From Auanema rhodensis (Eukaryota; Animalia; Nematoda), in contig OZ059894.1 of assembly GCA_964057225.1 (NCBI GenBank), positions 6,510,001 to 6,574,000 of the forward strand: a DNA stretch of 64,000 bases, given 5' to 3'. Under the pieces are notes generated by a model, which made no database searches, was not told the DNA's origin, and saw only the letters and a list, made by a program, of their open reading frames with translations. Positions within the stretch are counted from its first letter, which is position 1. The number at the start of each line of letters is the position of its first letter. Made by a program: the position numbers and the translations under genes. This document shows positions 21,798 through 64,000 of the stretch, one piece after another.

Positions 21798-21897
21798 TTC
21801 CTATCTTCGAGACTCAATTGAAACTGATGAACCCAAAATTAAGCCAATCTTCACTCACCGACAAACTATTCATTTAGCTTATTCTAAAAATGCTCTT
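21798..21897 (+). repeat. 100-bp duplicated fragment of an acl-6 coding exon (source 20247-20346)
   Basis: Ungapped alignment with 4 mismatches in 100 bp. Confidence 0.95.
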
Positions 21898-22016
21898 CGA
21901 TTTTATTTATTGTGATGCATTAATAATTTACAAAAACTTGCAATTTTGAATAATAGATGTTAAACTAAAAGTATTAGAGATTAATTAATTTTTTTAGACT
22001 GAAGCTACCTACCAAA

Positions 22017-22571: not shown

Positions 22572-22966
22572 TCATGGGACACATAAGGATGGAATACGAC
22601 CACACTTCCGATATTAGCACTTGAATTTTTGATCTTTATAATTTTACACAATTTCCAAAAATATCGAAATGTATATTGGATTAAGTAATTTTTTATAATC
22701 TTTTATGAACTATATCGAATGTAACGTATTAATTTGAACTACTTTTGTTGGAATATTGTATCGAAATATATGAAAACAAAATGAAATACCTTTTCAAATT
22801 GTGTTCAATTATATTAAAATCACAAAATACAGTAAATCTATGAAAACAACATCTGTTATTTCCACTCATCTTACCACGATTTGTATCACAATAAATCCAA
22901 GAACTGAACATATCATTCTATCCACATCGTTTCACTCTGTTAACAAAACATTCAGACATTTAACAA

Positions 22967-23521
22967 ATGCACTTATTCCCAGTATTAATCCCTTTTCACT
23001 TTTTCATTTTATATTTGGTTTTGATATCTAATTGAAACCTCTTATCAGGGCCAAGTAACTTAACAAGTGATAATTGTCCTGCCAATCAAACTTTCACTCA
23101 ATGTTCGTTAATGTGCCCCAAGAAGTGTTCAGAAAATGCGATCTTATCGAAAGGGAAAAAGAAAAAATAACATTTTTTAGTCAAATATAGGCATATGCAG
23201 CAATGTGTGGACCTCCAGCTTGCCAATGTAACATTGGATATGGTCTTAATGCTCAAAGTAAATGTATTTTGCAGAGTAATTGTCCACGAAATATTGAATT
23301 GCGTAAAATGTTTTACAGAATATTATATAATTTTAATACACAACATTTAAGCGAAAGTACTACCTGTTTCAAATAAATGTGCTCTTGTGGACTGTCGATT
23401 CGGTATGGTTTGTCGCTTGAATACTCAAGGTCTTGCTGAATGTGTTGATCCTCCTTCTGCAATTAGTTGTGCAAGCTTCCTTTGTGTACAAGGAATAACC
23501 TGTCGTACGAACGGCACTTGA
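22967..23521 (+). pseudogene. TIL domain plus FOLN-like Cys-repeat gene, probably decayed or truncated
   Basis: CPANQTFTQCSLMCPKKC...CSNVCGPPACQCNIGYGLNAQSKCILQSNC, then CALVDCRFGMVCRLNTQGLAECV and an incomplete CASFLCVQGITC repeat. An in-frame TAA (23056-58) precedes the TIL domain, one intron needs a GC donor (~23138), and the frame stops beside a transposon fragment. Confidence 0.65.
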
Positions 23522-23524
23522 GTC

Positions 23525-23679
23525 TTTTGAGAACTTTTACTACCGAATTGATAACGATACAGCAAGTTTTCAAATTTATATTCTAAACAGGGGTACACAC
23601 CGTGCTTAGAAGGCCCAATGAGAGCGGTGTAGAAGATAGGACTTGTAAATTGCGAAGAAAAAGAACAAGTAGGAGAGGG
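23525..23679 (-). mobile_element. Internal fragment of a MULE transposase gene related to the element at 52388-55050
   Basis: The reverse complement aligns to ~53282-53436 at roughly 85% identity, including an exact match to ACCCCTGTTTAGAATATAAATTTGAAAACTTGCTGTATCG. Confidence 0.92.
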
Positions 23680-23700
23680 TATGATTCAGTTATGGAACTT

Positions 23701-23748
23701 CAGAAGTAGCTTAATCTTTTAAAAACTTGAAGAAAAACGTAAAACGTA
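23701..23748 (-). terminator. Pol III oligo-T terminators downstream of the tRNA (repeated in each unit)
   Basis: The minus strand after the tRNA reads TACGTTTTACGTTTTTCTTCAAGTTTTT (T4, T5, T5). Confidence 0.8.
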
Positions 23749-23820
23749 TTCCGTTGCGGGGAATCGAACCCCGGCCTTATGGGTGAGAGCCATAAATCCT
23801 AACCACTAGACCACAACGGA
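23749..23820 (-). tRNA. tRNA-Glu(CTC), first copy, representative of block 1
   Basis: TCCGTTGTGGTCTAGTGGTTAGGATTTATGGCTCTCACCCATAAGGCCGGGGTTCGATTCCCCGCAACGGAA. Acceptor stem TCCGTTG/CAACGGA, anticodon arm TATGG-CT-CTC-AC-CCATA, A box TGGTCTAGTGG, B box GGTTCGATTCC. Confidence 0.98.
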
Positions 23821-26800
23821 TGTGATAGCTAAGCATCTTGAACCTTCAATAATCAGTCATTGCGTTTGCATTATGGCCAATGAAATTCAATTCGTGGATC
23901 ATTCGCAATGTTCTTGAAAACGTTGAGCATTGTTGTTGCCTAAGAATCAAGGTATGATTCAGTTATGGAACTTCAGAAGTAGCTTAATCTTTTAAAAACT
24001 TGAAGAAAAACGTAAAACGTATTCCGTTGCGGGGAATCGAACCCCGGCCTTATGGGTGAGAGCCATAAATCCTAACCACTAGACCACAACGGATGTGATA
24101 GCTAAGCATCTTGAACCTTCAATAATCAGTCATTGCGTTTGCATTATGGCCAATGAAATTCAATTCGTGGATCATTCGCAATGTTCTTGAAAACGTTGAG
24201 CATTGTTGTTGCCTAAGAATCAAGGTATGATTCAGTGCAGCTTAATCTTTTAAAAACTTGAAGAAAAACGTAAAACGTATTCCGTTGCGGGGAATCGAAC
24301 CCCGGCCTTATGGGTGAGAGCCATAAATCCTAACCACTAGACCACAACGGATGTGATAGCTAAGCATCTTGAACCTTCAATAATCAGTCATTGCGTTTGC
24401 ATTATGGCCAATGAAATTCAATTCGTGGATCATTCGCAATGTTCTTGAAAACGTTGAGCATTGTTGTTGCCTAAGAATCAAGGTATGATTCAGTTATGGA
24501 ACTTCAGAAGTAGCTTAATCTTTTAAAAACTTGAAGAAAAACGTAAAACGTATTCCGTTGCGGGGAATCGAACCCCGGCCTTATGGGTGAGAGCCATAAA
24601 TCCTAACCACTAGACCACAACGGATGTGATAGCTAAGCATCTTGAACCTTCAATAATCAGTCATTGCGTTTGCATTATGGCCAATGAAATTCAATTCGTG
24701 GATCATTCGCAATGTTCTTGAAAACGTTGAGCATTGTTGTTGCCTAAGAATCAAGGTATGATTCAGTGCAGCTTAATCTTTTAAAAACTTGAAGAAAAAC
24801 GTAAAACGTATTCCGTTGCGGGGAATCGAACCCCGGCCTTATGGGTGAGAGCCATAAATCCTAACCACTAGACCACAACGGATGTGATAGCTAAGCATCT
24901 TGAACCTTCAATAATCAGTCATTGCGTTTGCATTATGGCCAATGAAATTCAATTCGTGGATCATTCGCAATGTTCTTGAAAACGTTGAGCATTGTTGTTG
25001 CCTAAGAATCAAGGTATGATTCAGTTATGGAACTTCAGAAGTAGCTTAATCTTTTAAAAACTTGAAGAAAAACGTAAAACGTATTCCGTTGCGGGGAATC
25101 GAACCCCGGCCTTATGGGTGAGAGCCATAAATCCTAACCACTAGACCACAACGGATGTGATAGCTAAGCATCTTGAACCTTCAATAATCAGTCATTGCGT
25201 TTGCATTATGGCCAATGAAATTCAATTCGTGGATCATTCGCAATGTTCTTGAAAACGTTGAGCATTGTTGTTGCCTAAGAATCAAGGTATGATTCAGTGC
25301 AGCTTAATCTTTTAAAAACTTGAAGAAAAACGTAAAACGTATTCCGTTGCGGGGAATCGAACCCCGGCCTTATGGGTGAGAGCCATAAATCCTAACCACT
25401 AGACCACAACGGATGTGATAGCTAAGCATCTTGAACCTTCAATAATCAGTCATTGCGTTTGCATTATGGCCAATGAAATTCAATTCGTGGATCATTCGCA
25501 ATGTTCTTGAAAACGTTGAGCATTGTTGTTGCCTAAGAATCAAGGTATGATTCAGTGCAGCTTAATCTTTTAAAAACTTGAAGAAAAACGTAAAACGTAT
25601 TCCGTTGCGGGGAATCGAACCCCGGCCTTATGGGTGAGAGTCATAAATCCTAACCACTAGACCACAACGGATGTGATAGCTAAGCATCTTGAACCTTCAA
25701 TAATCAGTCATTGCGTTTGCATTATGGCCAATGAAATTCAATTCGTGGATCATTCGCAATGTTCTTGAAAACGTTGAGCATTGTTGTTGCCTAAGAATCA
25801 AGGTATGATTCAGTGCAGCTTAATCTTTTAAAAACTTGAAGAAAAACGTAAAACATATTCCGTTGCGGGGAATCGAACCCCGGCCTTATGGGTGAGAGCC
25901 ATAAATCCTAACCACTAGACCACAACGGATGTGATAGCTAAGCATCTTGAACCTTCAATAATCAGTCATTGCGTTTGCATTATGGCCAATGAAATTCAAT
26001 TCGTAGATCATTCGCAATGTTCTTGAAAACGTTGAGCATTGTTGTTGCCTAAGAATCAAGGTATGATTCAGTGCAGCTTAATCTTTTAAAAACTTGAAGA
26101 AAAACGTAAAACGTATTCCGTTGCGGGGAATCGAACCCCGGCCTTATGGGTGAGAGCCATAAATCCTAACCACTAGACCACAACGGATGTGATAGCTAAG
26201 CATCTTGAACCTTCAATAATCAGTCATTGCGTTTGCATTATGGCCAATGAAATTCAATTCGTGGATCATTCGCAATGTTCTTGAAAACGTTGAGCATTGT
26301 TGTTGCCTAAGAATCAAGGTATGATTCAGTTATGGAACTTCAGAAGTAGCTTAATCTTTTAAAAACTTGAAGAAAAACGTAAAACGTATTCCGTTGCGGG
26401 GAATCGAACCCCGGCCTTATGGGTGAGAGCCATAAATCCTAACCACTAGACCACAACGGATGTGATAGCTAAGCATCTTGAACCTTCAATAATCAGTCAT
26501 TGCGTTTGCATTATGGCCAATGAAATTCAATTCGTGGATCATTCGCAATGTTCTTGAAAACGTTGAGCATTGTTGTTGCCTAAGAATCAAGGTATGATTC
26601 AGTTATGGAACTTCAGAAGTAGCTTAATCTTTTAAAAACTTGAAGAAAAACGTAAAACGTATTCCGTTGCGGGGAATCGAACCCCGGCCTTATGGGTGAG
26701 AGCCATAAATCCTAACCACTAGACCACAACGGATGTGATAGCTAAGCATCTTGAACCTTCAATAATCAGTCATTGCGTTTGCATTATGGCCAATGAAATT

Positions 26801-46928: not shown

Positions 46929-49079
46929 TGGCTCTCACCCATAAGGCCGGGGTTCGATTCCCCGCAACGGAATACGTTTTACGCTTTCTTCAAGTTTTTA
47001 AATGCTCAAGCTACTTCTGAAGTTCCATAACTTAATCATACCTTGATTCTTAGGCAACAACAATGCTCAACGTTTTCAAGAACATTGCGAATGATCTACG
47101 AATTGAATTTCATTGGCCATAATGCAAACGCAATGACTGATTATTGAAGGTTCAAGATGCTTAGCTATCACATCCGTTGTGGTCTAGTGGTTAGGATTTA
47201 TGGCTCTCACCCATAAGGCCGGGGTTCGATTCCCCGCAACGGAATACGTTTTACGTTTTTCTTCAAGTTTTTAAAAGATTAAGCTACTTCTGAAGTTCCA
47301 TAACTGAATCATACCTTGATTCTTAGGCAACAACAATGCTCAACGTTTTCAAGAACATTGCGAATGATCTACGAATTGAATTTCATTGGCCATAATGCAA
47401 ACGCAATGACTGCTTATTGAAGGTTCAAGATGCTTAGCTATCACATCCGTTGTGGTCTAGTGGTTAGGATTTATGGCTCTCACCCATAAGGCCGGGGTTC
47501 GATTCCCCGCAACGGAATACGTTTTACGTTTTTCTTCAAGTTTTTAAAAGATTAAGCTACTTCTGAAGTTCCATAACTGAATCATACCTTGATTCTTAGG
47601 CAACAACAATGCTCAACGTTTTCAAGAACATTGCGAATGATCCACGAATTGAATTTCATTGGCCATAATGCAAACGCAATGACTGATTATTGAAGGTTCA
47701 AGATGCTTAGCTATCACATCCGTTGTGGTCTAGTGGTTAGGATTTATGGCTCTCACCCATAAGGCCGGGGTTCGATTCCCCGCAACGGAATACGTTTTAC
47801 GTTTTTCTTCAAGTTTTTAAAAGATTAAGCTACTTCTGAAGTTCCATAACTGAATCATACCTTGATTCTTAGGCTACAACAATACTCAACGTTTTCAAGA
47901 ACATTGCGAATGATCTACGAATTGAATTTCATTGGCCATAATGCAAACGCAATGACTGCTTATTGAAGGTTCAAGATGCTTAGCTATCACATCCGTTGTG
48001 GTCTAGTGGTTAGGATTTATGGCTCTCACCCATAAGGCCGGGGTTCGATTCCCCGCAACGGAATACGTTTTACGTTTTTCTTCCAGTTTTTAAAAGATTA
48101 AGCTACTTCTGAAGTTCCATAACTGAATCATACCTTGATTCTTAGGCAACAACAATGCTCAACGTTTTCAAGAACATTGCGAATGATCTACGAATTGAAT
48201 TTCATAGGCCATAATGCAAACGCAATGACTGATTATTGAAGGTTCAAGATGCTTAGCTATCACATCCGTTGTGGTCTAGTGGTTAGGATTTATGGCTCTC
48301 ACCCATAAGGCCGGGGTTCGATTCCCCGCAACGGAATACGTTTTACGTTTTTCTTCAAGTTTTTAAAAGATTAAGCTACTTCTGAAGTTCCATAACTGAA
48401 TCATACCTTGATTCTTAGGCAACAACAATGCTCAACGTTTTCAAGAACATTGCGAATGATCTACGAATTGAATTTCATTGGCCATAATGCAAACGCAATG
48501 ACTGATTATTGAAGGTTCAAGATGCTCAGCTATCACATCCGTTGTGGTCTAGTGGTTAGGATTTATGGCTCTCACCCATAAGGCCGGGGTTCGATTCCCC
48601 GCAACGGAATACGTTTTACGTTTTTCTTCAAGTTTTTAAAAGATTAAGCTACTTCTGAAGTTCCATAACTGAATCATACCTTGATTCTTAGGCTACAACA
48701 ATACTCAACGTTTTCAAGAAAATTGCGAATGATCCACGAAGTGAATTTCATTGGCCATAATGCAAACGCAATGACTGATTATTGAAGGTTCAAGATGCTT
48801 AGCTATCACATCCGTTGTGGTCTAGTGGTTAGGATTTATGGCTCTCACCCATAAGGCCGGGGTTCGATTCCCCGCAACGGAATACTTTTTACGTTTTTCT
48901 TCAAGTTTTTAAAAGATTAAGCTACTGCTGAAGTTCCATAACTGAATCATACCTTGATTCTTAGGCTACAACAATGCTCAACGTTTTCAAGAACATTGCG
49001 AATGATCTACGAATTGAATTTCATTGGCCATAATGCAAACGCAATGACTGCTTATTGAAGGTTCAAGATGCTTAGCTAT
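46929..49079 (+). repeat. tRNA-Glu(CTC) array, block 2 (subfamily A, inverted): one 3' half-tRNA plus 7 full copies
   Basis: Full copies start at 47173, 47446, 47719, 47992, 48265, 48538 and 48811 (273-bp period). Confidence 0.97.
47173..47244 (+). tRNA. tRNA-Glu(CTC), representative of block 2
   Basis: Same 72-nt sequence on the + strand. Confidence 0.98.
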
Positions 49080-49480
49080 TGTTATACTTTATAATTCTTT
49101 ACTTTATTCTTTCTATAATTTTTATGTATTTCTTTATTCTGTGTTTTATATTTTATATTTTATAATTCTAGTTTCTTGTCTTAGTGTATTATGTTATCAG
49201 TTATATTTTGCAGCCTCAGCATTTTCTGAGATAGTTATAATTGTCATTGACAACTTATAACCTTTCGTGGAAAATGCTGATAACATTCGCTATATAAGCT
49301 TGCCATTCAACTGAATCTTCAGTTGGCGGATTTATCTTTATCTTTATTTGTTTATTGTTTAAATGTTTTTTATTTATAATAAATCTTTCTCTCTTCCTCA
49401 AATCTTATTGTTTCTTTTACAACACATCAATCTAAGGGTCAATAACATGGAACATTAATATCCAAATCAAGGATATTACA
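49080..49480 (+). mobile_element. 5' LTR of an LTR retrotransposon (401 bp)
   Basis: Starts TGTTATA exactly where the array stops and ends TATTACA. Contains TATATAA (49291) and AATAAA (49378), and is immediately followed by a PBS. Confidence 0.8.
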
Positions 49481-49493
49481 TGGAGGTTCCACC
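49481..49493 (+). other. Primer-binding site complementary to the tRNA-Gln 3' end
   Basis: TGGAGGTTCCACC is the reverse complement of GGTGGAACCT-CCA, the metazoan tRNA-Gln 3' terminus. Confidence 0.8.
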
Positions 49494-49724
49494 TTAGAAT
49501 CTTTTTACGATTTTCGAACTCGATTAAATTATGAATTATCATTCAGTTAAAGAGAATTTATTTTTTTTGAGCTATTTCCCTGGGCTACCACCTCTCTTTC
49601 CAATTCAGTACGAAGGGTCTCACTCTTTTTTTTAATAAACAGGGTTGATATTTTGCGCAGGGTGAGATACTGAATTGGCCAACTTTTCGATATTTTTGTT
49701 TCTGCGCAGTTGTATTTTTGATTT

Positions 49725-50919
49725 TACAATTGCAGCACATCAAGGAATCATTAAAACAAAAGAAGCAATTCTAAGAAGATTCTATTGGACAAATATGCAG
49801 AACGACATTACTATATTCATCAAGAACTGCATTAAATGTGCTCAAAGAAAAAAAGATCCACATTCCATGACGGTACAACCAATAGGTCATTTTGAGATAC
49901 CAAGCAAGCCATTTGAACGAGTCCACATGGACGTAATGGGACCATTTCCCCCTTCAAAAAGAAACTGTACCTACGTCATTACCATGCAAGACGCATTTAC
50001 AAAATGGTCAACAACAATTGCTGTACCACAAATAACAACGGAAATCACAATTGACCGATTTCTACGACTTTTCGTTTACATTTTTGGACCACCTCATCGC
50101 TTGATCACCGATAGAGGTTCGAACTTTGTATCCAAAAAGTTCGAAGAAATGTGTACTAAACTTGGAATCAAACATGAACCAACACTACCACACCAAAAGA
50201 ACTCAAATGGACAAGTGGAAAGACTTCACAGAACCCTCGAAGAAGGATTAACCCACTACTTAAAAGAGGACCTTAGTGACTGGGATACTGTATTACCAAA
50301 AATCACTTTTGCTATAAACAATATTCAGCACGCGACTACAGGGATTGCGCCATACATTGCATTATTTGGTAAAGAATGCAGAATGTCAATGGACGCTGAA
50401 TTACCAGAAACGATCACCAAAATTCAAGAAATTTCTGAAGAATTACTCCAAAGAAGACCAGATATGGACAAGAGAGACGAAATAATAAAGAACCGCATAG
50501 CTAAAAATCAAGAAAATGCGAAAAAGAAGAAGGATAGAACGCAAAGAGCACACCATAGAGACATTCAACCGGGCGACATGGTGATGACGACCATAAAATC
50601 ACACCAAATCGGCCAAAAGCTTCGGAAAAGCTATGATGGACCATACGAAGTCATCAACGTAGAAGGATCAAAAGTTCAAATCAGAAATTCATCAGGAAAA
50701 CTACAAGATATCCACAAAGATAACTTGAAAATCTTCTCTCCTGCTTCACAAAACATCTCTTACAACACTCGCGCAAGATTTCGAGAAAGTCAAGCAGAAG
50801 AAGATAGCGACATCGAAATAATAGAAGTGATCAACAGGAACAACAAAGATAGCATAGATACAGAGCCAGAAGATGAAAATGAAGACGAAATATGGCTTCC
50901 GAGGAATGAAAAAGAATAA
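49725..50919 (+). mobile_element. Ty3/gypsy-type integrase, 5'-truncated pol remnant (no gag, PR, RT or RH)
   Basis: Partial zinc finger HQG...FYW...CIKC, catalytic HMD...TDRG-x35-E (GQVER), GPY/F module (YDGPYEV) and acidic tail. No stops. The TTG start given in the ORF track lies in non-coding leader sequence. Confidence 0.93.
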
Positions 50920-51058
50920 CAACAAGATAATGCTACGTTATTCAAATTATTGTAACAAAATAACGATGAATTAGAAAAAAAAAATTTTATGCTAAATAAC
51001 ATTCAAAATAAAAATAGCATTTAATAGAGATTGAAAAAGGAAAAATAAGGCAAATTCT

Positions 51059-51332
51059 AAACGAGGAGATGTTATGACTAATGGTTCCAAGTTACCGTAA
51101 TCCTATGCGGACTAGAGGACATTTTGACAACCATCAGAGCTCCATGTGCCTCCTCAAATAAGATGAGATAAACACTGGTAGGCGTATAAACCACAATTTC
51201 ATCTTAAGTGGTAGTCTCCATTAGTAATCAAGGATTCACTCTGGGAGACATATGGAGACACATTATTAAATCATAATCTCGGTTCAATTTAGAAATGAGT
51301 ACTTCTTGAGACCATTAGTCAAAATAATAACA
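51059..51332 (+). mobile_element. Polypurine tract plus putative 3' LTR (51070-~51332) not matching the 5' LTR
   Basis: AAACGAGGAGA abuts TGTTATGACTAATGGT, with a complementary end ACCATTAGTC(AAAATA)ATAACA and TATAAA at ~51185. The right boundary is uncertain. Confidence 0.6.
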
Positions 51333-51984
51333 TATTCCCATTCATTACTAGACCCTTATTCTACAATCTCTATTAGGAAATGCTTCAATATTAAGAGAAT
51401 TAATTTATGAAATTAATAATATTCTAATTCATCGTTACTTTATATTATATCGAACCCTTCTTATAAATTATTGTAATTTTGTTTTTATACTAATTAAAAC
51501 TCTATCATACTATAGTTATTGTGAAGCTAAAACAATTGAACTCTAAAACTCAGTTACATATAAGCCCAAATTTTTGTTTAAAATATCGCGAGGTCGCGAC
51601 AATCTTTGAAAAAGGGCACGTTCCATTCGGAGACTCTATATATGTAACTGCAGGGTTAGAGCCAGACCGACTAGAGGAATGTGGAATGGCACCGCCTTCC
51701 CTCATGCCCCTATTCGGGAGTTCACCCCTTTGCAAGCCCATGGACGGTTTGTATCTAACTTAGTTAATCTTATATATTAGTCTTTGTCTTGTAAATGTAG
51801 TTTACTTTATCCTTGTGTTATTGTATTGTAATGATATTGTATTGTGTATAATAAACCTATATATTTCCTTATCTTATGTAATCCTTATGCTCTGTTTCCA
51901 TACCGCTACACTTATGGAATACTATACGCGTAGTTGAGCAGACTACAATGGTCTGTTCAATATACGTAGGAGCATAATGGAACG

Positions 51985-52387
51985 GTTGTTGCCTAAGAAT
52001 CAAGGTATGATTCAGTTATGGAACTTCAGAAGTAGCTTAATCTTTTAAAAACTTGAAGAAAAACGTAAAACGTATTCCGTTGCGGGGAATCGAACCCCGG
52101 CCTTATGGGTGAGAGCCATAAATCCTAACCACTAGACCACAACGGATGTGATAGCTAAGCATCTTGAACCTTCAATAATCAGTCATTGCGTTTGCATTAT
52201 GGCCAATGAAATTCAATTCGTAGATCATTCGCAATGTTCTTGATTCGCAATGTTCTTGAAAACGTTGAGCATTGTTGTAGCCTAAGAATCAAGGTATGAA
52301 TCAGTTATGGAACTTCAGAAGTAGCTTAATCTTTTAAAAACTTGAAGAAAAACGTAAAACGTATTCCGTAGCGGGGAATCGAACCCC
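51985..52387 (-). repeat. tRNA-Glu(CTC) array, block 3 (subfamily A): one full copy (52075-52146) and a 3' fragment cut by the MULE
   Basis: About 1.5 units in minus orientation, with a 16-bp local tandem duplication at ~52228-52259. Confidence 0.95.
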
Positions 52388-52735
52388 GGGTGGCGGACGT
52401 TTCGTCGTCTCTAGTTTGTGAACTAGTTCAGGCTGATCATTAGAGGGCAAACTTTATGATAATGTGCTGACAACTGTCAGTGTTCATGTAACTCGGGGTG
52501 CTATTAAAGCTATAAATCTATAGAAGTCAGATATAAGTGGCTACATACCTTGAAGTGCCATCAAAATATAAATTGAAAAAAGCAGAAATTAAAATAAACA
52601 TACAGTTCTATCAACCAGGCTATCATCAAACAGTTTCAAGTCAACAGTTACGTGAGTTCATAGTAATAGTTGTTAGTTCATCTTTTCTTTCGATAAGTTT
52701 GCTTATTCACACTTTCTCATCTTTTCTCGTTCATC

Positions 52736-54802
52736 ATGATTTTTCCTTCTACTTTCTGTCCATTTTCTCTGATGATTAACGCTCAGGGTAAATTTGTTCT
52801 TGTTTCTCAGCCTTTTGATAATGTTCCTTCGGAGAACATAACTATCTTTTTTAATAATTCTTCAGTAAATACTCAGAATCTTGAAGTTTATTCAAATGAT
52901 GTAACTTCACTCTCATTTTTGAATTTCACTCTTCCATCTTTTAATATCCCTCCATTGAGGCAGCAAAATGTTAATTTTGCTTCTGCTCTTTCTCTAGCAA
53001 ATTCATCTGCGGCATCTTCTTCAGTTGAATCTGTTGCTACAGTTACTGTTCCTACTGTCAACAGCGTTCCACTGTTCTCTTCTTCTACTTCACATCTTTC
53101 TATTCAGCCTTCTTCTTCTTCTTCTGCCGTTCATTCTTCACCGTCATCTTCTCTTTCTTCTTCTCCTCCTTCTGTTTCCTCTCCTTCTTTACCTGTTCTC
53201 TCTCCTTCTTCTTCTGTTCCCTCTCCTTCTTCTTCTGTTCCCTCTCCTTCTTCTTCTGTTCCCTCTCCTTCTTCTTCTGTTCCCTCTCCTTCTTCTTCAT
53301 TTTCTTTGCAATCTGCAAATCCTAACTCATACGCCGCTCTCATTGCGCCTTCTAAGCAGGATGTACACCCCTGTTTAGAATATAAATTTGAAAACTTGCT
53401 GTATCGCTACCAATTCAGTAGTAAAAGTTCTCAAAAAGCTTATTCTATTTATCGTTGCACAGGTTGTAAACATTTGGGTAAATACACTTCTATCAAAGTA
53501 GAAAATAATGTATTTCTCGAAAATCCTGTTGCTCAAAACCATCATTGTGATCCATTTTTGTTTTCTATTAACAAATGCAAAAATATCACATACTCTCTAA
53601 CTCAGAATATTAAAAGTTCAGACTCATGTTTTGAGATGAAAGCATATTCCTTATTTGTCAATGAAATAAAAAAAATATTTCATGAATCTGAGTTAGAAGA
53701 GCATGAAAAGCAAGAAGTTTCCTCTGCTTGGTTTCATGGTGGCTATGACAGTAGACGTAGAGCTATTACAAGGGCTTTAAGTTCTCGTAAAGACTTAAGA
53801 ACATCCATGACCAATGTTCCTCTGTCTCTGTCTAAAACTATCAATGGTCGTACGTTCTTGCATTTTCATGACAGCGAGTTTCATTTGTATTTCGATACAT
53901 TTTGTTTGGAACTAGCTGTTCAGAATGGTTTAACTCATTTGCTTGGGGACGGTTGTTTCAAATACCAGCCTTTGGATATGGAACAAGCATATACCATCAT
54001 GGGCGGTTGCAGAAATGGAACAACTGTACCTCTTTTCTATTCCATTTTAAAAAATAAGAGTAGGTTCACTTATAGAAGGCTTCTTCAACATATTGCACTA
54101 GCTCTCTCCAACGTTGGTTGCATAGTTGAAAACCTTATTTTTATCTGTGATTTTGAGATCGCTGTAATAAGGGAAGCTGAAACTATTTTTAATTCTGGTC
54201 AAGGATGTGCATTTCATTATGCTCAGAGCTTGAACAGACGGTTTCTTCAACTGGGTTTGACACAAGCAGAGAAGCAATCCATTGAAATCAAACAATGGCA
54301 TGGTCGGCTGCTGGGCTTGCTCTTCCTTCAAACTGATCTTGTCTCACGGTCCGGGTTACTCAATTCTCCTGTTTCTTCTGATCATCCATCATATTCTTCT
54401 TGTCTTCAAATGATCAGTTATGTGAATGAAACATGGATTGAAGGACCTTTGCGACATTATTGGAGCAAATGGGACATAAAACAGTTTCGTACATCTAATA
54501 ATGTTGAATCTTTTCACCGTAAAATGAAGACTATTTTATCTTGCTCTCATCCTCCTCTTTCTGAATTAATTACTTTTTTTCATGGTGAAAATTTGATGGC
54601 TAATCATGTCCTGATCGCTTTGTCATCGAATGTTGAGCCTGCCAGGAAAAAAAGAAAAAACGTAATTGAGAGGCAACAACGGATTGAGGTTCAGTTTGAA
54701 AACTTTAGGAGCATCTCCAATAACCGACTGCCTAATCAGCAAGAAATAATAGCATATGTCGAGGAGATGGCGAAGTTTAACACCAGAAAATCTTATTTTT
54801 GA
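52736..54802 (+). CDS. MULE-type DDE transposase (688 aa) with a Ser/Pro-rich N-terminal extension
   Basis: Zn-finger-like YRCTGC...NHHC, D1 in LGDGCFK, D2 in ICDFEIA, CxxH motif GCAFHY, E in RTSNNVESFH, and NLS-like RKKRK. The ORF is uninterrupted. Confidence 0.93.
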   Translation: MIFPSTFCPFSLMINAQGKFVLVSQPFDNVPSENITIFFNNSSVNTQNLEVYSNDVTSLSFLNFTLPSFNIPPLRQQNVNFASALSLANSSAASSSVESVATVTVPTVNSVPLFSSSTSHLSIQPSSSSSAVHSSPSSSLSSSPPSVSSPSLPVLSPSSSVPSPSSSVPSPSSSVPSPSSSVPSPSSSFSLQSANPNSYAALIAPSKQDVHPCLEYKFENLLYRYQFSSKSSQKAYSIYRCTGCKHLGKYTSIKVENNVFLENPVAQNHHCDPFLFSINKCKNITYSLTQNIKSSDSCFEMKAYSLFVNEIKKIFHESELEEHEKQEVSSAWFHGGYDSRRRAITRALSSRKDLRTSMTNVPLSLSKTINGRTFLHFHDSEFHLYFDTFCLELAVQNGLTHLLGDGCFKYQPLDMEQAYTIMGGCRNGTTVPLFYSILKNKSRFTYRRLLQHIALALSNVGCIVENLIFICDFEIAVIREAETIFNSGQGCAFHYAQSLNRRFLQLGLTQAEKQSIEIKQWHGRLLGLLFLQTDLVSRSGLLNSPVSSDHPSYSSCLQMISYVNETWIEGPLRHYWSKWDIKQFRTSNNVESFHRKMKTILSCSHPPLSELITFFHGENLMANHVLIALSSNVEPARKKRKNVIERQQRIEVQFENFRSISNNRLPNQQEIIAYVEEMAKFNTRKSYF
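53200..53297 (+). repeat. 21-bp in-frame minisatellite (SPSSSVP) in the transposase
   Basis: CTCTCCTTCTTCTTCTGTTCC, four copies plus a partial copy. Confidence 0.95.
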
Positions 54803-55050
54803 ATCATTTAACTTGAAAAACTAAACTCTAATAAATTTTTTGAATCATATCTTTTTTTTCTAACACAAAAACCTCCTTGCCGTTTAGATTGAAAACCTTG
54901 ATTTTTTATGAACTGTTTAAGTTTTTGGGTAATTTTTAGAAGTCTAAACGACCAAAAACTGAGAGTACAACACGTGTGGTATAATTTACGATCGTTAGGC
55001 TTGCTGGGGAGAGGTTGTAAAAATAGGAGACGACGAAACGTCTCAGACCC

Positions 55051-58000
55051 TTCGATTCCCCGCAACGGAATACGTTTTACGCTGTCTTCAAGTTTTTAAA
55101 TGATCAAGCTACTTCTGAAGTTCCATAACTTAATCATAGATTGATTCTTAGCAACAACAATACTCCACGTTTTCAAGCGCATTTTGAATGATCCACGAAT
55201 TGAATTTCATTGGTCATCATGTAAACGCAATGACTGATTATTAAAGGTTCAAGATATGTCGATATCATATCCGTTGTGGTCTAGTGGTTAGGATTTATGG
55301 CTCTCACCCATAAGGCCGGGGTTCGATTCCCCGCAACGGAATACGTTTTACGCTGTCTTCAAGTTTTTAAATGATCAAGCTACTTCTGAAGTTCCATAAC
55401 TTAATCATAGATTGATTCTTAGCAACAACAATACTCCACGTTTTCAAGCGCATTTTGAATGATCCACGAATTGAATTTCATTGGTCATCATGTAAACGCA
55501 ATGACTGATTATTAAAGGTTCAAGATATGTCGATATCATATCCGTTGTGGTCTAGTGGTTAGGATTTATGGCTCTCACCCATAAGGCCGGGGTTCGATTC
55601 CCCGCAACGGAATACGTTTTACGCTGTCTTCAAGTTTTTAAATGATCAAGCTACTTCTGAAGTTCCATAACTTAATCATAGATTGATTCTTAGCAACAAC
55701 AATACTCCACGTTTTCAAGCGCATTTTGAATGATCCACGAATTGAATTTCATTGGTCATCATGTAAACGCAATGACTGATTATTAAAGGTTCAAGATATG
55801 TCGATATCATATCCGTTGTGGTCTAGTGGTTAGGATTTATGGCTCTCACCCATAAGGCCGGGGTTCGATTCCCCGCAACGGAATACGTTTTACGCTGTCT
55901 TCAAGTTTTTAAATGATCAAGCTACTTCTGAAGTTCCATAACTTAATCATAGATTGATTCTTAGCAACAACAATACTCCACGTTTTCAAGCGCATTTTGA
56001 ATGATCCACGAATTGAATTTCATTGGTCATCATGTAAACGCAATGACTGATTATTAAAGGTTCAAGATATGTCGATATCATATCCGTTGTGGTCTAGTGG
56101 TTAGGATTTATGGCTCTCACCCATAAGGCCGGGGTTCGATTCCCCGCAACGGAATACGTTTTACGCTTTCTTCAAGTTTTTAAATGCTCAAGCTACTTCT
56201 GAAGTTCCATAACTTAATCATAGATTGATTCTTAGCAACAACAATACTCCACGTTTTCAAGCGCATTTTGAATAATCCACGAATTGAATTTCATTGGTCA
56301 TCATGTAAACGCAATAACTGATTATTAAAGGTTCAAGATATGTCGATATCATATCCGTTGTGGTCTAGTGGTTAGGATTTATGGCTCTCACCCATAAGGC
56401 CGGGGTTCGATTCCCCGCAACGGAATACGTTTTACGCTGTCTTCAAGTTTTTAAATGATCAAGCTACTTCTGAAGTTCCATACCTTAATCATAGATTGAT
56501 TCTTAGCAACAACAATACTCCACGTTTTCAAGCGCATTTTGAATAATCCACGAATTGAATTGCATTGGTCATCATGTAAATGCAATGACTGATTATTAAA
56601 GGTTTAAGTTATGTCGATATCATATCCGTTGTGGTCTAGTGGTTAGGATTTATGGCTCTCACCCATAAGGCCTGGGTTCGATTCCCCGCAACGGAATACG
56701 TTTTACGATTTCTTCAAGTTTTTAAATGCTCAAGCTACTTCTGAAGTTCCATAACTTAATCATACCTTGATTCCTAGGCAACAACAATACTCCACGTTTT
56801 CAAGCGCATTTTGAATGATCCACGAATTGAATTTCATTGGTCATCATGTAAACGCAATGACTGATTATTAAAGGTTTAAGTTATGTCGATATCATATCCG
56901 TTGTGGTCTAGTGATTAGGATTTATGGCTCTCACCCATAAGGCCTGGGTTCGATTCCCCGCAACGGAATACGTTTTACGATTTCTTCAAGTTTTTAAATG
57001 CTCAAGCTACTTCTGAAGTTCCATAACTTAATCATACCTTGATTCTTAGGCAACAACAATACTCCACGTTTTCAAGCGCATTTTGAATAATCCACGAATT
57101 GAATTTCATTGGTCATCATGTAAATGCAATGACTGATTATTAAAGGTTTAAGTTATGTCGATATCATATCCGTTGTGGTCTAGTGGTTAGGATTTATGGC
57201 TCTCACCCATAAGGCCGGGGTTCGATTCCCCGCAACGGAATACGTTTTACGATTTCTTCAAGTTTTTAAATGCTCAAGCTACTTCTGAAGTTCCATAACT
57301 TAATCATACCTTGATTCTTAGGCAACAACAATACTCCACGTTTTCAAGCGCATTTTGAATGATCCACGAATTGAATTTCATTGGTCATCATGTAAACGCA
57401 ATGACTGATTATTAAAGGTTCAAGATATGTCGATATCATATCCGTTGTGGTCTAGTGGTTAGGATTTATGGCTCTCACCCATAAGGCCGGGGTTCGATTC
57501 CCCGCAACGGAAAACGTTTTACGCTTTCTTCAAGTTTTTAAATGCTCAAGCTACTTCTGAAGTTCCATAACTTAATCATAGATTGATTCTTAGCAACAAC
57601 AATACTCCACGTTTTCAAGCGCATTTTGAATGATCCACGAATTGAATTTCATTGGTCATCATGTAAAAGCAATGACTGATTATTAAAGGTTCAAGATATG
57701 TCGATATTATATCCGTTGTGGTCTACTGATTAGGATTTATGGCTCTCACCCATAAGGCCGGGGTTCGATTCCCCGCAACGGAATACGTTTTACGCTGTCT
57801 TCAAGTTTTTAAATGATCAAGCTACTTCTGAAGTTCCATAACTTAATCATACCTTGATTCTTAGCAACAACAATACTCCACGTTTTCAAGCGCATTTTGA
57901 ATGATCCACGAATTGAATTTCATTGGTCATCATGTAAACGCAATGACTGATTATTAAAGGTTCAAGATATGTCGATATTATATCCGTTGTGGTCTAGTGG

Positions 58001-61000
58001 TTAGGATTTATGGCTCTCACCCATAAGGCCGGGGTTCGATTCCCCGCAACGGAATACGTTTTACGCTGTCTTCAAGTTTTTAAATGATCAAGCTACTTCT
58101 GAAGTTCCATAACTTAATCATACCTTGATTCTTAGCAACAACAATACTCCACGTTTTCAAGCGCATTTTGAATGATCCACGAATTGAATTTCATTGGTCA
58201 TCATGTAAATGCAATGACTGATTATTAAAGGTTCAAGATATGTCGATATTATATCCGTTGTGGTCTAGTGGTTAGGATTTATGGCTCTCACCCATAAGGC
58301 CGGGGTTCGATTCCCCGCAACGGAAAACGTTTTACGCTTTCTTCAAGTTTTTAAATGCTCAAGCTACTTCTGAAGTTCCATAACTTAATCATAGATTGAT
58401 TCTTAGCAACAACAATACTCCACGTTTTCAAGCGCATTTTGAATGATCCACGAATTGAATTTCATTGGTCATCATGTAAATGCAATGACTGATTATTAAA
58501 GGTTCAAGATATGTCGATATCATATCCGTTGTGGTCTAGTGGTTAGGATTTATGGCTCTCACCCATAAGGCCGGGGTTCGATTCCCCGCAACGGAAAACG
58601 TTTTACGCTTTCTTCAAGTTTTTAAATGCTCAAGCTACTTCTGAAGTTCCATAACTTAATCATAGATTGATTCTTAGCAACAACAATACTCCACGTTTTC
58701 AAGCGCATTTTGAATGATCCACGAATTGAATTTCATTGGTCATCATGTAAATGCAATGACTGATTATTAAAGGTTCAAGATATGTCGATATTATATCCGT
58801 TGTGGTCTAGTGGTTAGGATTTATGGCTCTCACCCATAAGGCCGGGGTTCGATTCCCCGCAACGGAATACGTTTTACGCTGTCTTCAAGTTTTTAAATGA
58901 TCAAGCTACTTCTGAAGTTCCATAACTTAATCATAGATTGATTCTTAGCAACAACAATACTCCACGTTTTCAAGCGCATTTTGAATGATCCACGAATTGA
59001 ATTTCATTGGTCATCATGTAAACGCAATGACTGATTATTAAAGGTTCAAGATATGTCGATATCATATCCGTTGTGGTCTAGTGGTTAGGATTTATGGCTC
59101 TCACCCATAAGGCCGGGGTTCGATTCCCCGCAACGGAATACGTTTTACGCTTTCTTCAAGTTTTTAAATGCTCAAGCTACTTCTGAAGTTCCATAACTTA
59201 ATCATAGATTGATTCTTAGGCAACAACAATACTCCACGTTTTCAAGCGCATTTTGAATGATCCACGAATTGAATTTCATTGGTCATCATGTAAACGCAAT
59301 GACTGATTATTAAAGGTTCAAGTTATGACGATATCATATCCGTTGTGGTCTAGTGGTTAGGATTTATGGCTCTCACCCATAAGGCCGGGGTTCGATTCCC
59401 CGCAACGGAATACGTTTTACGCTTTCTTCAAGTTTTTAAATGCTCAAGCTACTTCTGAAGTTCCATAACTTAATCATAGATTGATTCTTAGCAACAACAA
59501 TACTCCACGTTTTCAAGCGCATTTTGAATGATCCACGAATTGAATTTCATTGGTCATCATGTAAACGCAATGACTGATTATTAAAGGTTCAAGATATGTC
59601 GATATCATATCCGTTGTGGTCTAGTGGTTAGGATTTATGGCTCTCACCCATAAGGCCGGGGTTCGATTCCCCGCAACGGAATACGTTTTACGCTTTCTTC
59701 AAGTTTTTAAATGCTCAAGCTACTTCTGAAGTTCCATAACTTAATCATAGATTGATTCTTAGCAACAACAATACTCCACGTTTTCAAGCGCATTTTGAAT
59801 GATCCACGAATTGAATTTCATTGGTCATCATGTAAACGCAATGACTGATTATTAAAGGTTCAAGTTATGACGATATCATATCCGTTGTGGTCTAGTGGTT
59901 AGGACTTATGGCTCTCACCCATAAGGCCGGGGTTCGATTCCCCGCAACGGAATACGTTTTACGCTTTCTTCAAGTTTTTAAATGCTCAAGCTACTTCTGA
60001 AGTTCCATAACTTAATCATAGATTGATTCTTAGGCAACAACAATACTCCACGTTTTCAAGCGCATTTTGAATGATCCACGAATTGAATTTCATTGGTCAT
60101 CATGTAAACGCAATGACTGATTATTAAAGGTTCAAGATATGTCGATATCATATCCGTTGTGGTCTAGTGGTTAGGATTTATGGCTCTCACCCATAAGGCC
60201 GGGGTTCGATTCCCCGCAACGGAATACGTTTTACGCTTTCTTCAAGTTTTTAAATGCTCAAGCTACTTCTGAAGTTCCATAACTTAATCATAGATTGATT
60301 CTTAGCAACAACAATACTCCACGTTTTCAAGCGCATTTTGAATGATCCACGAATTGAATTTCATTGGTCATCATGTAAACGCAATGACTGATTATTAAAG
60401 GTTCAAGATATGTCGATATCATATCCGTTGTGGTCTAGTGGTTAGGATTTATGGCTCTCACCCATAAGGCCGGGGTTCGATTCCCCGCAACGGAATACGT
60501 TTTACGCTTTCTTCAAGTTTTTAAATGCTCAAGCTACTTCTGAAGTTCCATAACTTAATCATAGATTGATTCTTAGCAACAACAATACTCCACGTTTTCA
60601 AGCGCATTTTGAATGATCCACGAATTGAATTTCATTGGTCATCATGTAAACGCAATGACTGATTATTAAAGGTTCAAGTTATGTCGATATCATATCCGTT
60701 GTGGTCTAGTGGTTAGGATTTATGGCTCTCACCCATAAGGCCGGGGTTCGATTCCCCGCAACGGAATACGTTTTACGCTTTCTTCAAGTTTTTAAATGCT
60801 CAAGCTACTTCTGAAGTTCCATAACTTAATCATAGATTGATTCTTAGCAACAACAATACTCCACGTTTTCAAGCGCATTTTGAATGATCCACGAATTGAA
60901 TTTCATTGGTCATCATGTAAACGCAATGACTGATTATTAAAGGTTCAAGATATGTCGATATCATATCCGTTGTGGTCTAGTGGTTAGGATTTATGGCTCT

Positions 61001-64000
61001 CACCCATAAGGCCGGGGTTCGATTCCCCGCAACGGAATACGTTTTACGCTTTCTTCAAGTTTTTAAATGCTCAAGCTACTTCTGAAGTTCCATAACTTAA
61101 TCATAGATTGATTCTTAGCAACAACAATACTCCACGTTTTCAAGCGCATTTTGAATGATCCACGAATTGAATTTCATTGGTCATCATGTAAACGCAATGA
61201 CTGATTATTAAAGGTTCAAGATATGTCGATATCATATCCGTTGTGGTCTAGTGGTTAGGATTTATGGCTCTCACCCATAAGGCCGGGGTTCGATTCCCCG
61301 CAACGGAATACGTTTTACGCTTTCTTCAAGTTTTTAAATGCTCAAGCTACTTCTGAAGTTCCATAACTTAATCATAGATTGATTCTTAGCAACAACAATA
61401 CTCCACGTTTTCAAGCGCATTTTGAATGATCCACGAATTGAATTTCATTGGTCATCATGTAAACGCAATGACTGATTATTAAAGGTTCAAGTTATGACGA
61501 TATCATATCCGTTGTGGTCTAGTGGTTAGGATTTATGGCTCTCACCCATAAGGCCGGGGTTCGATTCCCCGCAACGGAAAACGTTTTACGCTTTCTTCAA
61601 GTTTTTAAATGCTCAAGCTACTTCTGAAGTTCCATAACTTAATCATACCTTGATTCTTAGCAACAACAATACTCCACGTTTTCAAGCGCATTTTGAATGA
61701 TCCACGAATTGAATTTCTTTGGTCATCATGTAAACGCAATGACTGATTATTAAAGGTTCAAGTTATGACGATATCATATCCGTTGTGGTCTAGTGGTTAG
61801 GATTTATGGCTCTCACCCATAAGGCCGGGGTTCGATTCCCCGCAACGGAATACGTTTTACGCTTTCTTCAAGTTTTTAAATGATCAAGCTACTTCTGAAG
61901 TTCCATAACTTAATCATACCTTGATTCTTAGCAACAACAATACTCCACGTTTTCAAGCGCATTTTGAATGATCCACGAATTGAATTTCATTGGTCATCAT
62001 GTAAATGCAATGACTGATTATTAAAGGTTCAAGATATGTCGATATCATATCCGTTGTGGTCTAGTGGTTAGGATTTATGGCTCTCACCCATAAGGCCGGG
62101 GTTCGATTCCCCGCAACGGAATATGTTTTACGCTTTCTTCATGTTTTTAAATGCTCAAGCTACTTCTGAAGTTCCATAACTTAATCATACCTTGATTCTT
62201 AGGCAACAACAATACTCCACGTTTTCAAGCGCATTTTGAATGATCCACGAATTGAATTTCATTGGTCATCATGTAAACGCAATGACTGATTAATAAAGGT
62301 TCAAGTTATGTCGATATCATATCCGTTGTGGTCTAGTGGTTAGGATTTATGGCTCTCACCCATAAGGCCGGGGTTCGATTCCCCGCAACGGAATATGTTT
62401 TACGCTTTCTTCAAGTTTTTAAATGCTCAAGCTACTTCTGAAGTTCCATAACTTAATCATAGATTGATTCTTAGCAACAACAATACTCCACGTTTTCAAG
62501 CGCATTTTGAATGATCCACGATTTGAACTTCATTGGTCATCATGTAAACGCAATGACTGATTATTAAAGGTTCAAGTTATGTCGATATCATATCCGTTGT
62601 GGTCTAGTGGTTAGGATTTATGGCTCTCACCCATAAGGCCGGGGTTCGATTCCCCGCAACGGAATACGTTTTACGCTTTCTTCAAGTTTTTAAATGCTCA
62701 AGCTACTTCTAAAGTTCCATAACTTAATCATAGATTGATTCTTAGCAACAACAATACTCCACGTTTTCAAGCGCATTTTGAATGATCCACGAATTGAATT
62801 TCATTGGTCATCATGTAAACGCAATGACTGATTATTAAAGGTTCAAGATATGTCGATATCATATCCGTTGTGGTCTAGTGGTTAGGATTTATGGCTCTCA
62901 CCCATAAGGCCGGGGTTCGATTCCCCGCAACGGAATACGTTTTACGCTGTCTTCAAGTTTTTAAATGCTCAAGCTACTTCTGAAGTTCCATAACTTAATC
63001 ATAGATTGATTCTTAGGCAACAACAATACTCCACGTTTTCAAGCGCATTTTGAATAATCCACGAATTGAATTTCATTGGTCATCATGTAAACGCAATAAC
63101 TGATTATTAAAGGTTCAAGATATGTCGATATCATATCCGTTGTGGTCTAGTGGTTAGGATTTATGGCTCTCACCCATAAGGCCGGGGTTCGATTCCCCGC
63201 AACGGAATACGTTTTACGCTGTCTTCAAGTTTTTAAATGCTCAAGCTACTTCTGAAGTTCCATAACTTAATCATAGATTGATTCTTAGCAACAACAATAC
63301 TCCACGTTTTCAAGCGCATTTTGAATGATCCACGATTTGAACTTCATTGGTCATCATGTAAACGCAATGACTGATTATGAAAGGTTCAAGTTATGTCGAT
63401 ATCATATCCGTTGTGGTCTAGTGGTTAGGATTTATGGCTCTCACCCATAAGGCCGGGGTTCGATTCCCCGCAACGGAATACGTTTTACGCTGTCTTCAAG
63501 TTTTTAAATGCTCAAGCTACTTCTGAAGTTCCATAACTTAATCATAGATTGATTCTTAGCAACAACAATACTCCACGTTTTCAAGCGCATTTTGAATGAT
63601 CCACGATTTGAACTTCATTGGTCATCATGTAAACGCAATAACTGATTATTAAAGGTTCAAGATATGTCGATATCATATCCGTTGTGGTCTAGTGGTTAGG
63701 ATTTATGGCTCTCACCCATAAGGCCGGGGTTCGATTCCCCGCAACGGAATACGTTTTACGCTGTCTTCAAGTTTTTAAATGCTCAAGCTACTTCTGAAGT
63801 TCCATAACTTAATCATAGATTGATTCTTAGCAACAACAATACTCCACGTTTTCAAGCGCATTTTGAATGATCCACGATTTGAACTTCATTGGTCATCATG
63901 TAAACGCAATGACTGATTATGAAAGGTTCAAGTTATGTCGATATCATATCCGTTGTGGTCTAGTGGTTAGGATTTATGGCTCTCACCCATAAGGCCGGGG
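55051..64000 (+). repeat. tRNA-Glu(CTC) array, block 4 (spacer subfamily B): 3' fragment, 32 full copies and one copy cut by the window end; 271/272-bp units
   Basis: Copies start at 55270, 55541 ... 63678, 63949. Diagnostic 5' flank GATATGTCGATATCATA. Confidence 0.98.
55270..55341 (+). tRNA. tRNA-Glu(CTC), representative of block 4
   Basis: 72-nt sequence identical to the block 1 consensus. Confidence 0.98.

Follow-up and report, generated by a model that had tools for sequence, protein, structure and literature searches.

Organization of the tRNA-Glu(CTC) array

The window, that is, the whole 64-kb stretch of Auanema rhodense DNA that was analysed, contains 127 tRNA-Glu(CTC) genes detected by ARAGORN and distributed in blocks of 87 (minus strand, 23749-46784), 7 (plus strand, 47173-48882), 1 (minus strand, 52075-52146) and 32 genes (plus strand, 55270-63749). 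A first-pass annotation had counted 127 copies as 87+7+1+32, identical to these numbers, and had described a repeat every 258-273 bp that runs off the window, in agreement with both Tandem Repeats Finder and the start-to-start spacing of the genes (258, 272, 273 and 271 bp). Tandem Repeats Finder delimited three arrays, located at 23678-46929 (period 273, 87.1 copies, 96% matches), 46929-49079 (7.9 copies) and 55051-64000 (period 271, 33 copies, up to the window end).

Block A1 (23678-46929, minus strand) consists of 87 head-to-tail genes in units of 273 bp (rarely 272 bp) and 258 bp, the shorter form missing 15 bp of spacer. Block A2 (46929-49079, plus strand) is inverted with respect to A1, with the inversion junction at 46928/46929, and begins with a truncated tRNA, the 3' half of the gene (46929-46972), followed by seven full genes. 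A mirror-image duplication at this inversion was rejected, as the variant patterns on either side are not mirrored. About 1.5 A-type units make up a short minus-strand stretch (51985-52389), in which the solo tRNA gene (52075-52146) is accompanied by a duplication of 16 bp of spacer and by the final 26 nt of another tRNA (52364-52389), truncated by a transposon. Block B (55051-64000, plus strand) comprises a 20-nt piece of tRNA 3' end, 32 full genes and a further copy that starts at 63949 and is incomplete at the window end, showing that the array continues past the window. Two subfamilies are defined by these units, A with 258/273 bp (272 bp now and then) and B with 271/272 bp.

The left array border is occupied by an inverted fragment (23525-23679, minus strand) of the interior of a Mutator-like transposon, 88% identical to positions 53282-53436 of a member of the same family located inside the array. 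The GC content of the array flank is 0.33, compared with the published 32.2% for Auanema rhodense.

Copy number was also examined in public short-read contig sets from three DNA runs belonging to three separate studies (X1, X3 and X8). Depth summed over contigs, which is only a rough proxy for copy number, was ~650-3,100 times that of the unique flank for the unit in X1 and X3, and in X8 reached ~400-800 times the unique flank in spacer bins and ~3,700 times in the tRNA-rich bin. At the left array border, the contigs of X3 and X8 end at 23523 and the depth of X1 climbs about tenfold. With fixed-period head-to-tail units across tens of kb and a high copy number in reads, the locus has the properties of a satellite-like tandem repeat.

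The repeated unit looks like an intact Pol III gene

In a representative gene (47173-47244, plus strand), the 72-nt tRNA bears the anticodon CTC, with an A box at 47180-47190, a B box at 47223-47233 and a first T4 terminator at 47249-47252. Over a 10-kb stretch searched with the Rfam tRNA model (gathering score 29), each of the 14 copies present scored 65.3 bits. Cloverleaf and anticodon, internal A and B boxes and a near oligo-T terminator are all present, as in type 2 Pol III tRNA genes.

Sequence conservation among copies is high: 115 of the 127 are identical and the remaining 12 have one or two substitutions. The CTC anticodon region is kept in all 127 copies, as is a run of at least four T (T4-5) beginning 4-5 nt past the tRNA 3' end, which is followed by a second T5 run. 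The A-box and B-box consensus motifs are well established; here, the A-box-like 11-mer corresponds to tRNA positions 8-18 and the B-box 11-mer to positions 51-61. Both are unaltered in 121 of 127 copies, three copies having changes in the A box and three in the B box. Ten tRNA positions are variable, five of them inside one of the boxes, which is not more than expected by chance (p = 0.16). The variants private to the array include G31A, found in three copies, and A57G, found in two. The description as a satellite built from genes of one isoacceptor, with their Pol III signals intact, is borne out, all 127 genes being Glu(CTC) with terminators and nearly all having both boxes unaltered.

The spacer, ~200 bp per unit, appears unstructured. 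It matched no Rfam family and folded no better than shuffled sequences (z = 0.48), and the idea of a hidden RNA or structure was dropped; no short internal repeats were found in it. A tRNA-derived SINE was also rejected, given that the copies are strictly head-to-tail and contain a full-length tRNA, with neither a tail nor target-site duplications.

Constraint on the tRNA and concerted evolution

Comparison of the two subfamilies revealed 26 differences over ~201 spacer positions (~13%), whereas their tRNA consensus sequences differ at none of 72. Fixed differences are significantly depleted in the tRNA relative to the spacer (Fisher test, p = 0.0003), and the depletion holds for the 50 tRNA positions that remain once both boxes are left out (p = 0.001). 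Consistently, within subfamily B and the 273-bp units of A, minor alleles are 6-12 times less dense in the tRNA than in the spacer. We conclude that the tRNA body is constrained.

Pairwise divergence within block A1 amounts to 0.40% in its left part (up to ~36.9 kb) and 2.09% in its right part; the left 13 kb of the array, at 0.4% divergence, is too young to reveal selection. Both the mosaic A/B units, identified at 37797, 39935 and 40480, and the long stretches of identical units are indicative of unequal exchange and gene conversion. Subfamilies, local uniformity and mosaic units are the pattern left by concerted evolution.

Transposons within the array

Two mobile elements interrupt the array. 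The first is an LTR retroelement remnant (49080-51984, plus strand) with an integrase ORF (49675-50919) matching the Pfam families rve and Integrase_H2C2. Its right end meets array spacer of opposite orientation, while its left end (49079/49080) meets array spacer 4 nt ahead of the expected tRNA start, a position that fits guidance of an integrase by the Pol III complex. The second is a Mutator-like transposon (52390-55050, plus strand) with a 688-aa ORF (52736-54802), whose Pfam MULE score of 25.4 bits is slightly below the cut-off and whose protein atlas matches are MULE families. An exact look-up of this transposase ORF returned no entry. Inverted tRNA 3' pieces border the transposon at both of its junctions with the array (52389/52390 and 55050/55051), and it divides subfamily A from subfamily B. 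The location of transposon ends at the tRNA start and at T-arm positions gives a hint of integration guided by Pol III in an animal, something that would be of independent interest.

Neighbouring genes and transcription

The array has an expressed neighbour at a distance of 1 kb, a gene (21868-22700, plus strand) that codes for a small secreted cysteine-rich protein. Four introns (41, 62, 47 and 126 nt) interrupt this gene and its spliced product is 92 aa long, the end of the last exon being approximate. In one RNA contig set, depth was ~6 over the array versus ~2,000 over this adjoining gene. Dispersed tRNA-Glu copies with unique flanks exist in addition to the array, and the only tRNA-bearing RNA contig carries the flanks of such a dispersed copy, not those of the array. 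No spacer-containing or array-specific transcript was present in this contig set, which is weak evidence, contigs showing presence rather than absence. RNA libraries of this kind rarely capture tRNA. We infer present or recent transcription of at least part of the array.

Comparison with known tRNA arrays

An August 2026 preprint on Auanema rhodense gives 19,554 annotated tRNA loci, of which only 215 are pseudogenes, and mentions tandem arrays of 5S rRNA, several tRNAs and U2 among the germline-restricted repeats. The contrast drawn in the first-pass annotation with C. elegans, where tRNA genes are mostly dispersed, is therefore inapplicable, tRNA arrays and 19,554 tRNA loci having already been reported for Auanema rhodense itself. 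The present array is real and striking, and the tRNA arrays of this species are already reported in outline. The preprint passages that mention such arrays name them in passing, without anatomy, subfamilies, constraint or transposon content. The arrays listed there are germline-restricted, whereas the present one appears to lie beside ordinary genes with no break motif between. In the literature searched, we found no nematode tRNA arrays apart from those of the Auanema preprint.

Long head-to-tail tRNA arrays are known from Entamoeba histolytica, in 2010 called the only reported case (PMC2888827), and the arrangement of tRNA genes as long head-to-tail tandem repeats is common to both systems. 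Unlike those of Entamoeba, the present units hold one tRNA and a spacer without short repeats, and the same tRNA also occurs as dispersed copies with unique flanks, so that an assignment to the Entamoeba type was discarded. Entamoeba units often combine several different tRNA genes with short tandem repeats, nearly all tRNA genes of this organism are in arrays, and the arrays may serve as chromosome ends.

On chromosome 1 of Arabidopsis thaliana, an array of 81 pre-tRNA genes is formed by 27 units of three genes (PMC2886086). Local tandem amplification shaped by unequal exchange is common to this array and ours, but in Arabidopsis the copies are far fewer and each unit holds three genes. Very-high-copy animal Pol III arrays include the oocyte-type 5S rRNA and tandem tDNA repeats of Xenopus and the tRNA arrays of zebrafish chromosome 4; the Xenopus arrays are linked to oocyte stocking. 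The likeness to these arrays is one of description, and most of their units contain several genes, in contrast to the one tRNA of the present unit.

Origin and possible functions of the array

From the observed array anatomy, copy number, constraint and recombination signatures, we lean towards a real tandem amplification of an ordinary Pol III tRNA-Glu(CTC) gene, as one locus of a genome-wide tRNA expansion, for which we use the term gene satellite. Each 258-273-bp unit would be a self-contained transcription unit made of a 72-nt tRNA, its internal boxes, T-run terminators and ~200 bp of spacer. Unequal exchange, replication slippage and gene conversion among units would shift array size and keep the units uniform, and transposon insertions and inversions have split the array into blocks. 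Mutations do arise in single tRNA copies; none has spread, while the A and B spacers drifted ~13% apart, which implies that selection, or conversion from copies under selection, keeps the tRNA body unchanged. The output of the array would add to the tRNA-Glu pool well past decoding need, and the first-pass annotation was right in placing the copy number above any obvious decoding need. The array would then be a gene satellite and not a dedicated structural element. Against this explanation, the constraint could derive from gene conversion by dispersed functional copies, without the array copies being used. In Arabidopsis, most clustered tRNA genes are reported to be epigenetically silenced, an analogy that counts against use of the array.

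The functions initially listed for the locus (structural platform, germline source of tRNA or tRNA fragments, selfish DNA) all keep some probability, the constraint on the tRNA body arguing against a purely inert satellite. An inert or silenced satellite is nevertheless the most serious alternative, although we find it rather doubtful. In that case, a tRNA gene would by chance have given rise to a tandem repeat whose expansion is neutral or selfish, in a heterochromatic state with little or no tRNA made, and uniformity would reflect recent amplification and conversion, not use. A copy number far over decoding need is consistent with such a state, as are the very low divergence in the left part of block A, the lack of a spacer-containing RNA contig in the one RNA contig set and the location of half of the variable tRNA positions in the A and B boxes, though this last proportion is compatible with chance. 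According to the preprint, its authors regard repeat accumulation in Auanema rhodense as a by-product of weak surveillance. An inert repeat is harder to reconcile with a 13% divergence of the spacer accompanied by no fixed change in the 72 nt of the tRNA, 50 nt of which are outside the boxes, with terminators kept in every copy, or with a retroelement end at the Pol III start region.

A germline-restricted supply array is unlikely. It would lie in the DNA dropped from body cells at the 12-cell stage and be used, or tolerated, only in the germline, for example if oocytes were stocked with tRNA in the manner of the frog oocyte-type 5S genes. In Auanema rhodense, 61% of the germline genome is deleted from body cells; an eliminated repeat would be expected to show an approximately eight-fold lower per-copy read depth than retained DNA and to be separated from retained genes by a break-site palindrome with the core GGC-N3-GCC. 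Read depth over a repeat combines its copy number with the depth per copy. The listing of several tRNA arrays among the germline-restricted tandem repeats favours this possibility, and the array-to-flank depth ratio varies about three- to four-fold among the DNA runs, as a varying germline share would predict, although strain or library differences fit as well. The window contains three GGC-N3-GCC sites, none at an array border, the best having 8-9 of 14 palindromic pairs in a GC-rich or transposon context; this search is approximate, the exact Auanema motif being given in a figure of the preprint. A 29-nt palindrome at 9387-9415 (12 of 14 pairs) was set aside as a break site, as it has no GGC-N3-GCC core and, by our own estimate, chance alone would produce ~0.3 palindromes of this kind in 64 kb. 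No convincing palindrome thus separates the array from the neighbouring genes in the window, and among the genes on that side are one of the Otx homeobox class and, 1 kb away, the highly expressed secreted-protein gene. As no break-site motif lies between the array and these expressed neighbours, we lean towards retention of the array in somatic DNA.

A structural element seems less probable still. Dense B boxes, 127 within 40 kb, might form a TFIIIC/condensin platform, an insulator or heterochromatin boundary, or a meiotic pairing block, regardless of tRNA output, and the preprint speculates that chromosome-specific repeat blocks might help homologue pairing; however, no sequence feature requires such a role, and the constraint spans the whole tRNA, beyond the A and B boxes. 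Finally, although long uniform repeats are generally difficult to assemble, over-expansion of a short cluster by the assembler, which the first-pass annotation had named as a way for its claim to fail, is highly improbable and close to refuted, read-derived depth supporting at least the assembled copy number, with unit depths that exceed the unique flank by factors of hundreds to thousands in the three DNA runs, each from a different study, and the units showing a structured variant pattern, two length classes, mosaics and unique transposon junctions.

Implications for Auanema rhodense

With about twenty thousand tRNA genes, a free-living nematode breaks with the correspondence usually seen between codon demand and the number of tRNA genes. 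Leaders and trailers specific to each subfamily, together with private tRNA variants, are natural tags with which to ask whether Pol III genes, once amplified, are put to use, silenced or discarded. The position of each array relative to the break sites would tell whether translation-gene dosage is regulated by DNA elimination. We raise only tentatively the possibility that the array is either somatic and actively transcribed, with hundreds to thousands of working tRNA-Glu copies in body cells, or, for the bulk of its copies, a germline-only developmental tRNA reservoir discarded at the 12-cell stage. If either reading were true, programmed DNA elimination would be tied to the gene dosage of the translation machinery.

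Gene content and unit structure of the array

Annotation of the whole window with ARAGORN returned 127 tRNA-Glu(CTC) genes and no other tRNA. The genes lie in a block of 87 on the minus strand (23749-46784), a block of seven on the plus strand (47173-48882), a solo gene on the minus strand (52075-52146) and a block of 32 on the plus strand (55270-63749); an extra copy, starting at 63949, is cut by the window's end. The first-pass annotation, made from the sequence alone, had counted 87, 7, 1 and 32 such genes, exactly the ARAGORN tally, and its observation is confirmed in full. Its comparison with C. elegans was misplaced, as the genome concerned is not that of C. elegans. Tandem Repeats Finder delimited three arrays, at 23678-46929 (period 273, 87.1 copies), 46929-49079 (7.9 copies) and 55051-64000 (period 271, 33 copies), the last running up to the window's end. 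Units are spaced by 258, 272, 273 or 271 bp.

Every copy searched with the Rfam tRNA model scored 65.3 bits, for a gathering score of 29. The tRNA sequence is identical in 115 of the 127 genes, and the remaining 12 carry one or two substitutions. Among these variants are the array-private G31A (three copies) and A57G (two copies). All 127 genes retain the anticodon region and an oligo-T stretch of four or more residues that begins 4-5 nt past the 3′ end; the A box is changed in three copies and the B box in three.

Each unit consists of the 72-nt tRNA, a trailer in which four bases precede a T4 run, with a T5 run close behind, and a spacer of about 200 bp. The spacer had no Rfam match, even with a permissive cut-off, and its predicted folding was no better than that of shuffled sequence (z = 0.48). 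Two subfamilies can be distinguished, separated by a Mutator-like transposon. Subfamily A, to its left, comprises the blocks of 87 and seven genes and the solo copy; its units measure 273 bp (now and then 272 bp) or, in a form without 15 bp of spacer, 258 bp, the two forms being intermixed with no regular higher-order pattern. Subfamily B, the right block, has units of 271/272 bp.

Constraint on the tRNA and exchange between units

Comparison of the A and B consensus sequences showed the 72 tRNA positions to be free of differences, against 26 differences among about 201 positions of spacer (Fisher p = 0.0003). If the tRNA changed as fast as the spacer, the probability of finding no change would be 5e-5 over all 72 positions and 0.001 over the 50 that lie outside the A and B boxes. 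In subfamily B, and among the 273-bp units of A, minor alleles are 6-12 times less dense in the tRNA than in the spacer, a measure that is supportive only, since its cells are not independent. Ten tRNA positions are mutated in single copies and none of these mutations has spread. The whole length of the tRNA body is therefore under constraint, which could act either through selection on the array copies or through conversion from selected copies.

A rival explanation is that the array is an inert or silenced satellite. In the RNA contig set, the tRNA is covered to a depth of about 6 by a contig that carries the flanks of a dispersed copy and comes from a library whose type is not on record. 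RNA libraries of such kind seldom capture tRNA.

Downstream of the tRNA, the spacers of three block A units (37797, 39935 and 40480) have B-type variants, and A-type patches occur in some units of block B. Mosaic units in both blocks indicate that the subfamilies exchange sequence. Two of the three mosaic units in block A have a B-box change, A57G, in common. Within block A, the units of the left 13 kb are nearly uniform (0.40% pairwise divergence) and those of the right part more varied (2.09%); similarity between units declines only weakly with distance. Unequal exchange, slippage and conversion, plus a recent burst on the left, would fit all of these patterns.

Transposable elements and array junctions

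At 46928/46929, the minus block joins the plus block via a tRNA cut down to its 3′ half. A fresh palindromic duplication was ruled out at this point, given that the variant patterns on the two sides are not mirrored.

At 49079/49080, the array spacer stops exactly 4 nt short of where the tRNA should begin and is followed by LTR-like sequence starting with TG. The interior of this element contains an integrase ORF matching Pfam rve and Integrase_H2C2, and the position of the junction resembles that of retroelements inserting at Pol III start sites. The right end of the element adjoins array spacer of the opposite orientation, which implies a rearrangement after the insertion. If the pattern seen at this one junction were general, it would point to Pol III complexes on germline tRNA genes.

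The Mutator-like transposon (52390-55050) contains a 688-aa ORF whose protein atlas neighbours are MULE families and whose Pfam MULE match falls just below the cut-off. Its inverted repeats have a common 16-nt core, a few bases inside each end, and a 21-bp tandem repeat within the transposase ORF (53147-53298) encodes a serine/proline-rich stretch. On both sides the transposon is bordered by inverted fragments of the tRNA 3′ end, of 26 nt (52364-52389) and 20 nt (55051-55070). This arrangement stems either from two recombined insertions of a family that targets the T-arm region or from transposon ends that carry tRNA-derived sequence. Immediately before the array, at its left border, lie 155 bp (23525-23679) that match an internal part of the ORF region (53282-53436) in inverted orientation with 88% identity, so the array begins at a transposon fragment. 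That the border belongs to a transposon family also explains why the contigs of two sequencing runs end at 23523.

Flanking genes and read depth

A small secreted cysteine-rich protein of about 92 aa is encoded on the plus strand at 21868-22700, 1 kb from the array. It has a trypsin-inhibitor-like cysteine pattern, and RNA contigs cover its gene to a depth of about 2,000. The four introns of this gene are short, at 41-126 nt. Exons of an Otx-class homeobox gene were located on the plus strand at 11787-12964, with the homeodomain exon inside the ORF 12659-12964. The GC content of the flank is 0.33; the value published for Auanema rhodense is 32.2%. Both this value and the short introns fit Auanema rhodense, the probable source.

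Logan contigs from three public DNA runs of separate studies (coded X1, X3 and X8) and one RNA run were placed on 20950-23950, which covers unique flank and one unit. The runs are dated 2019, 2023 and 2024 and bear three organism labels, with almost identical sequences. At 22743-23106, the run labelled organism B shows 9 differences in 364 letters but is identical in the neighbouring contigs, reflecting either a locally divergent haplotype or a strain difference beside the array.

Unique flank depth was about 235 in X1, 325 in X3 and 13 in X8, and the three array bins ranged over 410,000-731,000, 211,000-353,000 and 5,500-48,000, respectively. Summing the depth of contigs does not yield a copy number, and we allowed for up to about two-fold inflation by overlapping short contigs. 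With the depth halved, the A-type unit still amounts to several hundred to more than 1000 flank equivalents, against 95 A-type units in the window. An assembly artefact is thus practically excluded: the over-expansion that the first-pass annotation had proposed checking for is not found, the depth-based number of A-type copies exceeding the number assembled. The excess means that further A-type units exist elsewhere or that the locus is under-assembled. In the same placement, loose contig ends join the tRNA to several other flanks, so dispersed copies of the same tRNA-Glu gene exist too.

Somatic retention or elimination

Another rival explanation is a germline-only reservoir. According to a preprint (August 2026), 61% of the 180.9-Mb germline genome of Auanema rhodense is eliminated from somatic cells, and the 28 break sites bear a 29-nt palindrome that resembles the one in Oscheius tipulae, with the core GGC-N3-GCC. 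Three GGC-N3-GCC sites occur in the whole window, none at an array border and none with a convincing context; the core used is that of Oscheius tipulae, and the exact Auanema motif may differ. A 29-nt palindrome at 9387-9415 (12 of 14 positions paired) was rejected as a break site, as it is without the core and chance alone would yield about 0.3 such palindromes in a window of this size. The Otx-class gene and the highly expressed cysteine-rich protein gene lie on the same side as the array. The lack of a break motif at the array border and the position of these genes lead us to lean towards retention of the array in the soma.

The array-to-flank depth ratio shows a three- to four-fold spread between DNA runs, in which copy number and per-copy depth are not separable. 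A germline share that differs from run to run could account for the spread, provided that most copies elsewhere are germline-only; differences in strain or library could do so equally well.

Genome-wide setting

The same preprint (August 2026) reports 19,554 annotated tRNA loci, of which just 215 are pseudogenes, and describes "some" germline-restricted tandem repeats as arrays of 5S rRNA, several tRNAs and U2. A 2019 short-read assembly held only about 500 tRNA loci, which indicates that arrays were collapsed there.

From its sequence features, the array is most likely a gene satellite of working-looking Pol III units, with a constrained tRNA body and a uniformity that would be maintained by unequal exchange and conversion. 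A structural role is a further rival to this reading. The array is also most likely one of the loci of a tRNA amplification that extends across the genome and has been reported before. The subfamilies, the constraint, the mosaics, the transposon junctions and the likely gene-rich position appear to be new detail. This anatomical detail makes questions on the array directly testable.
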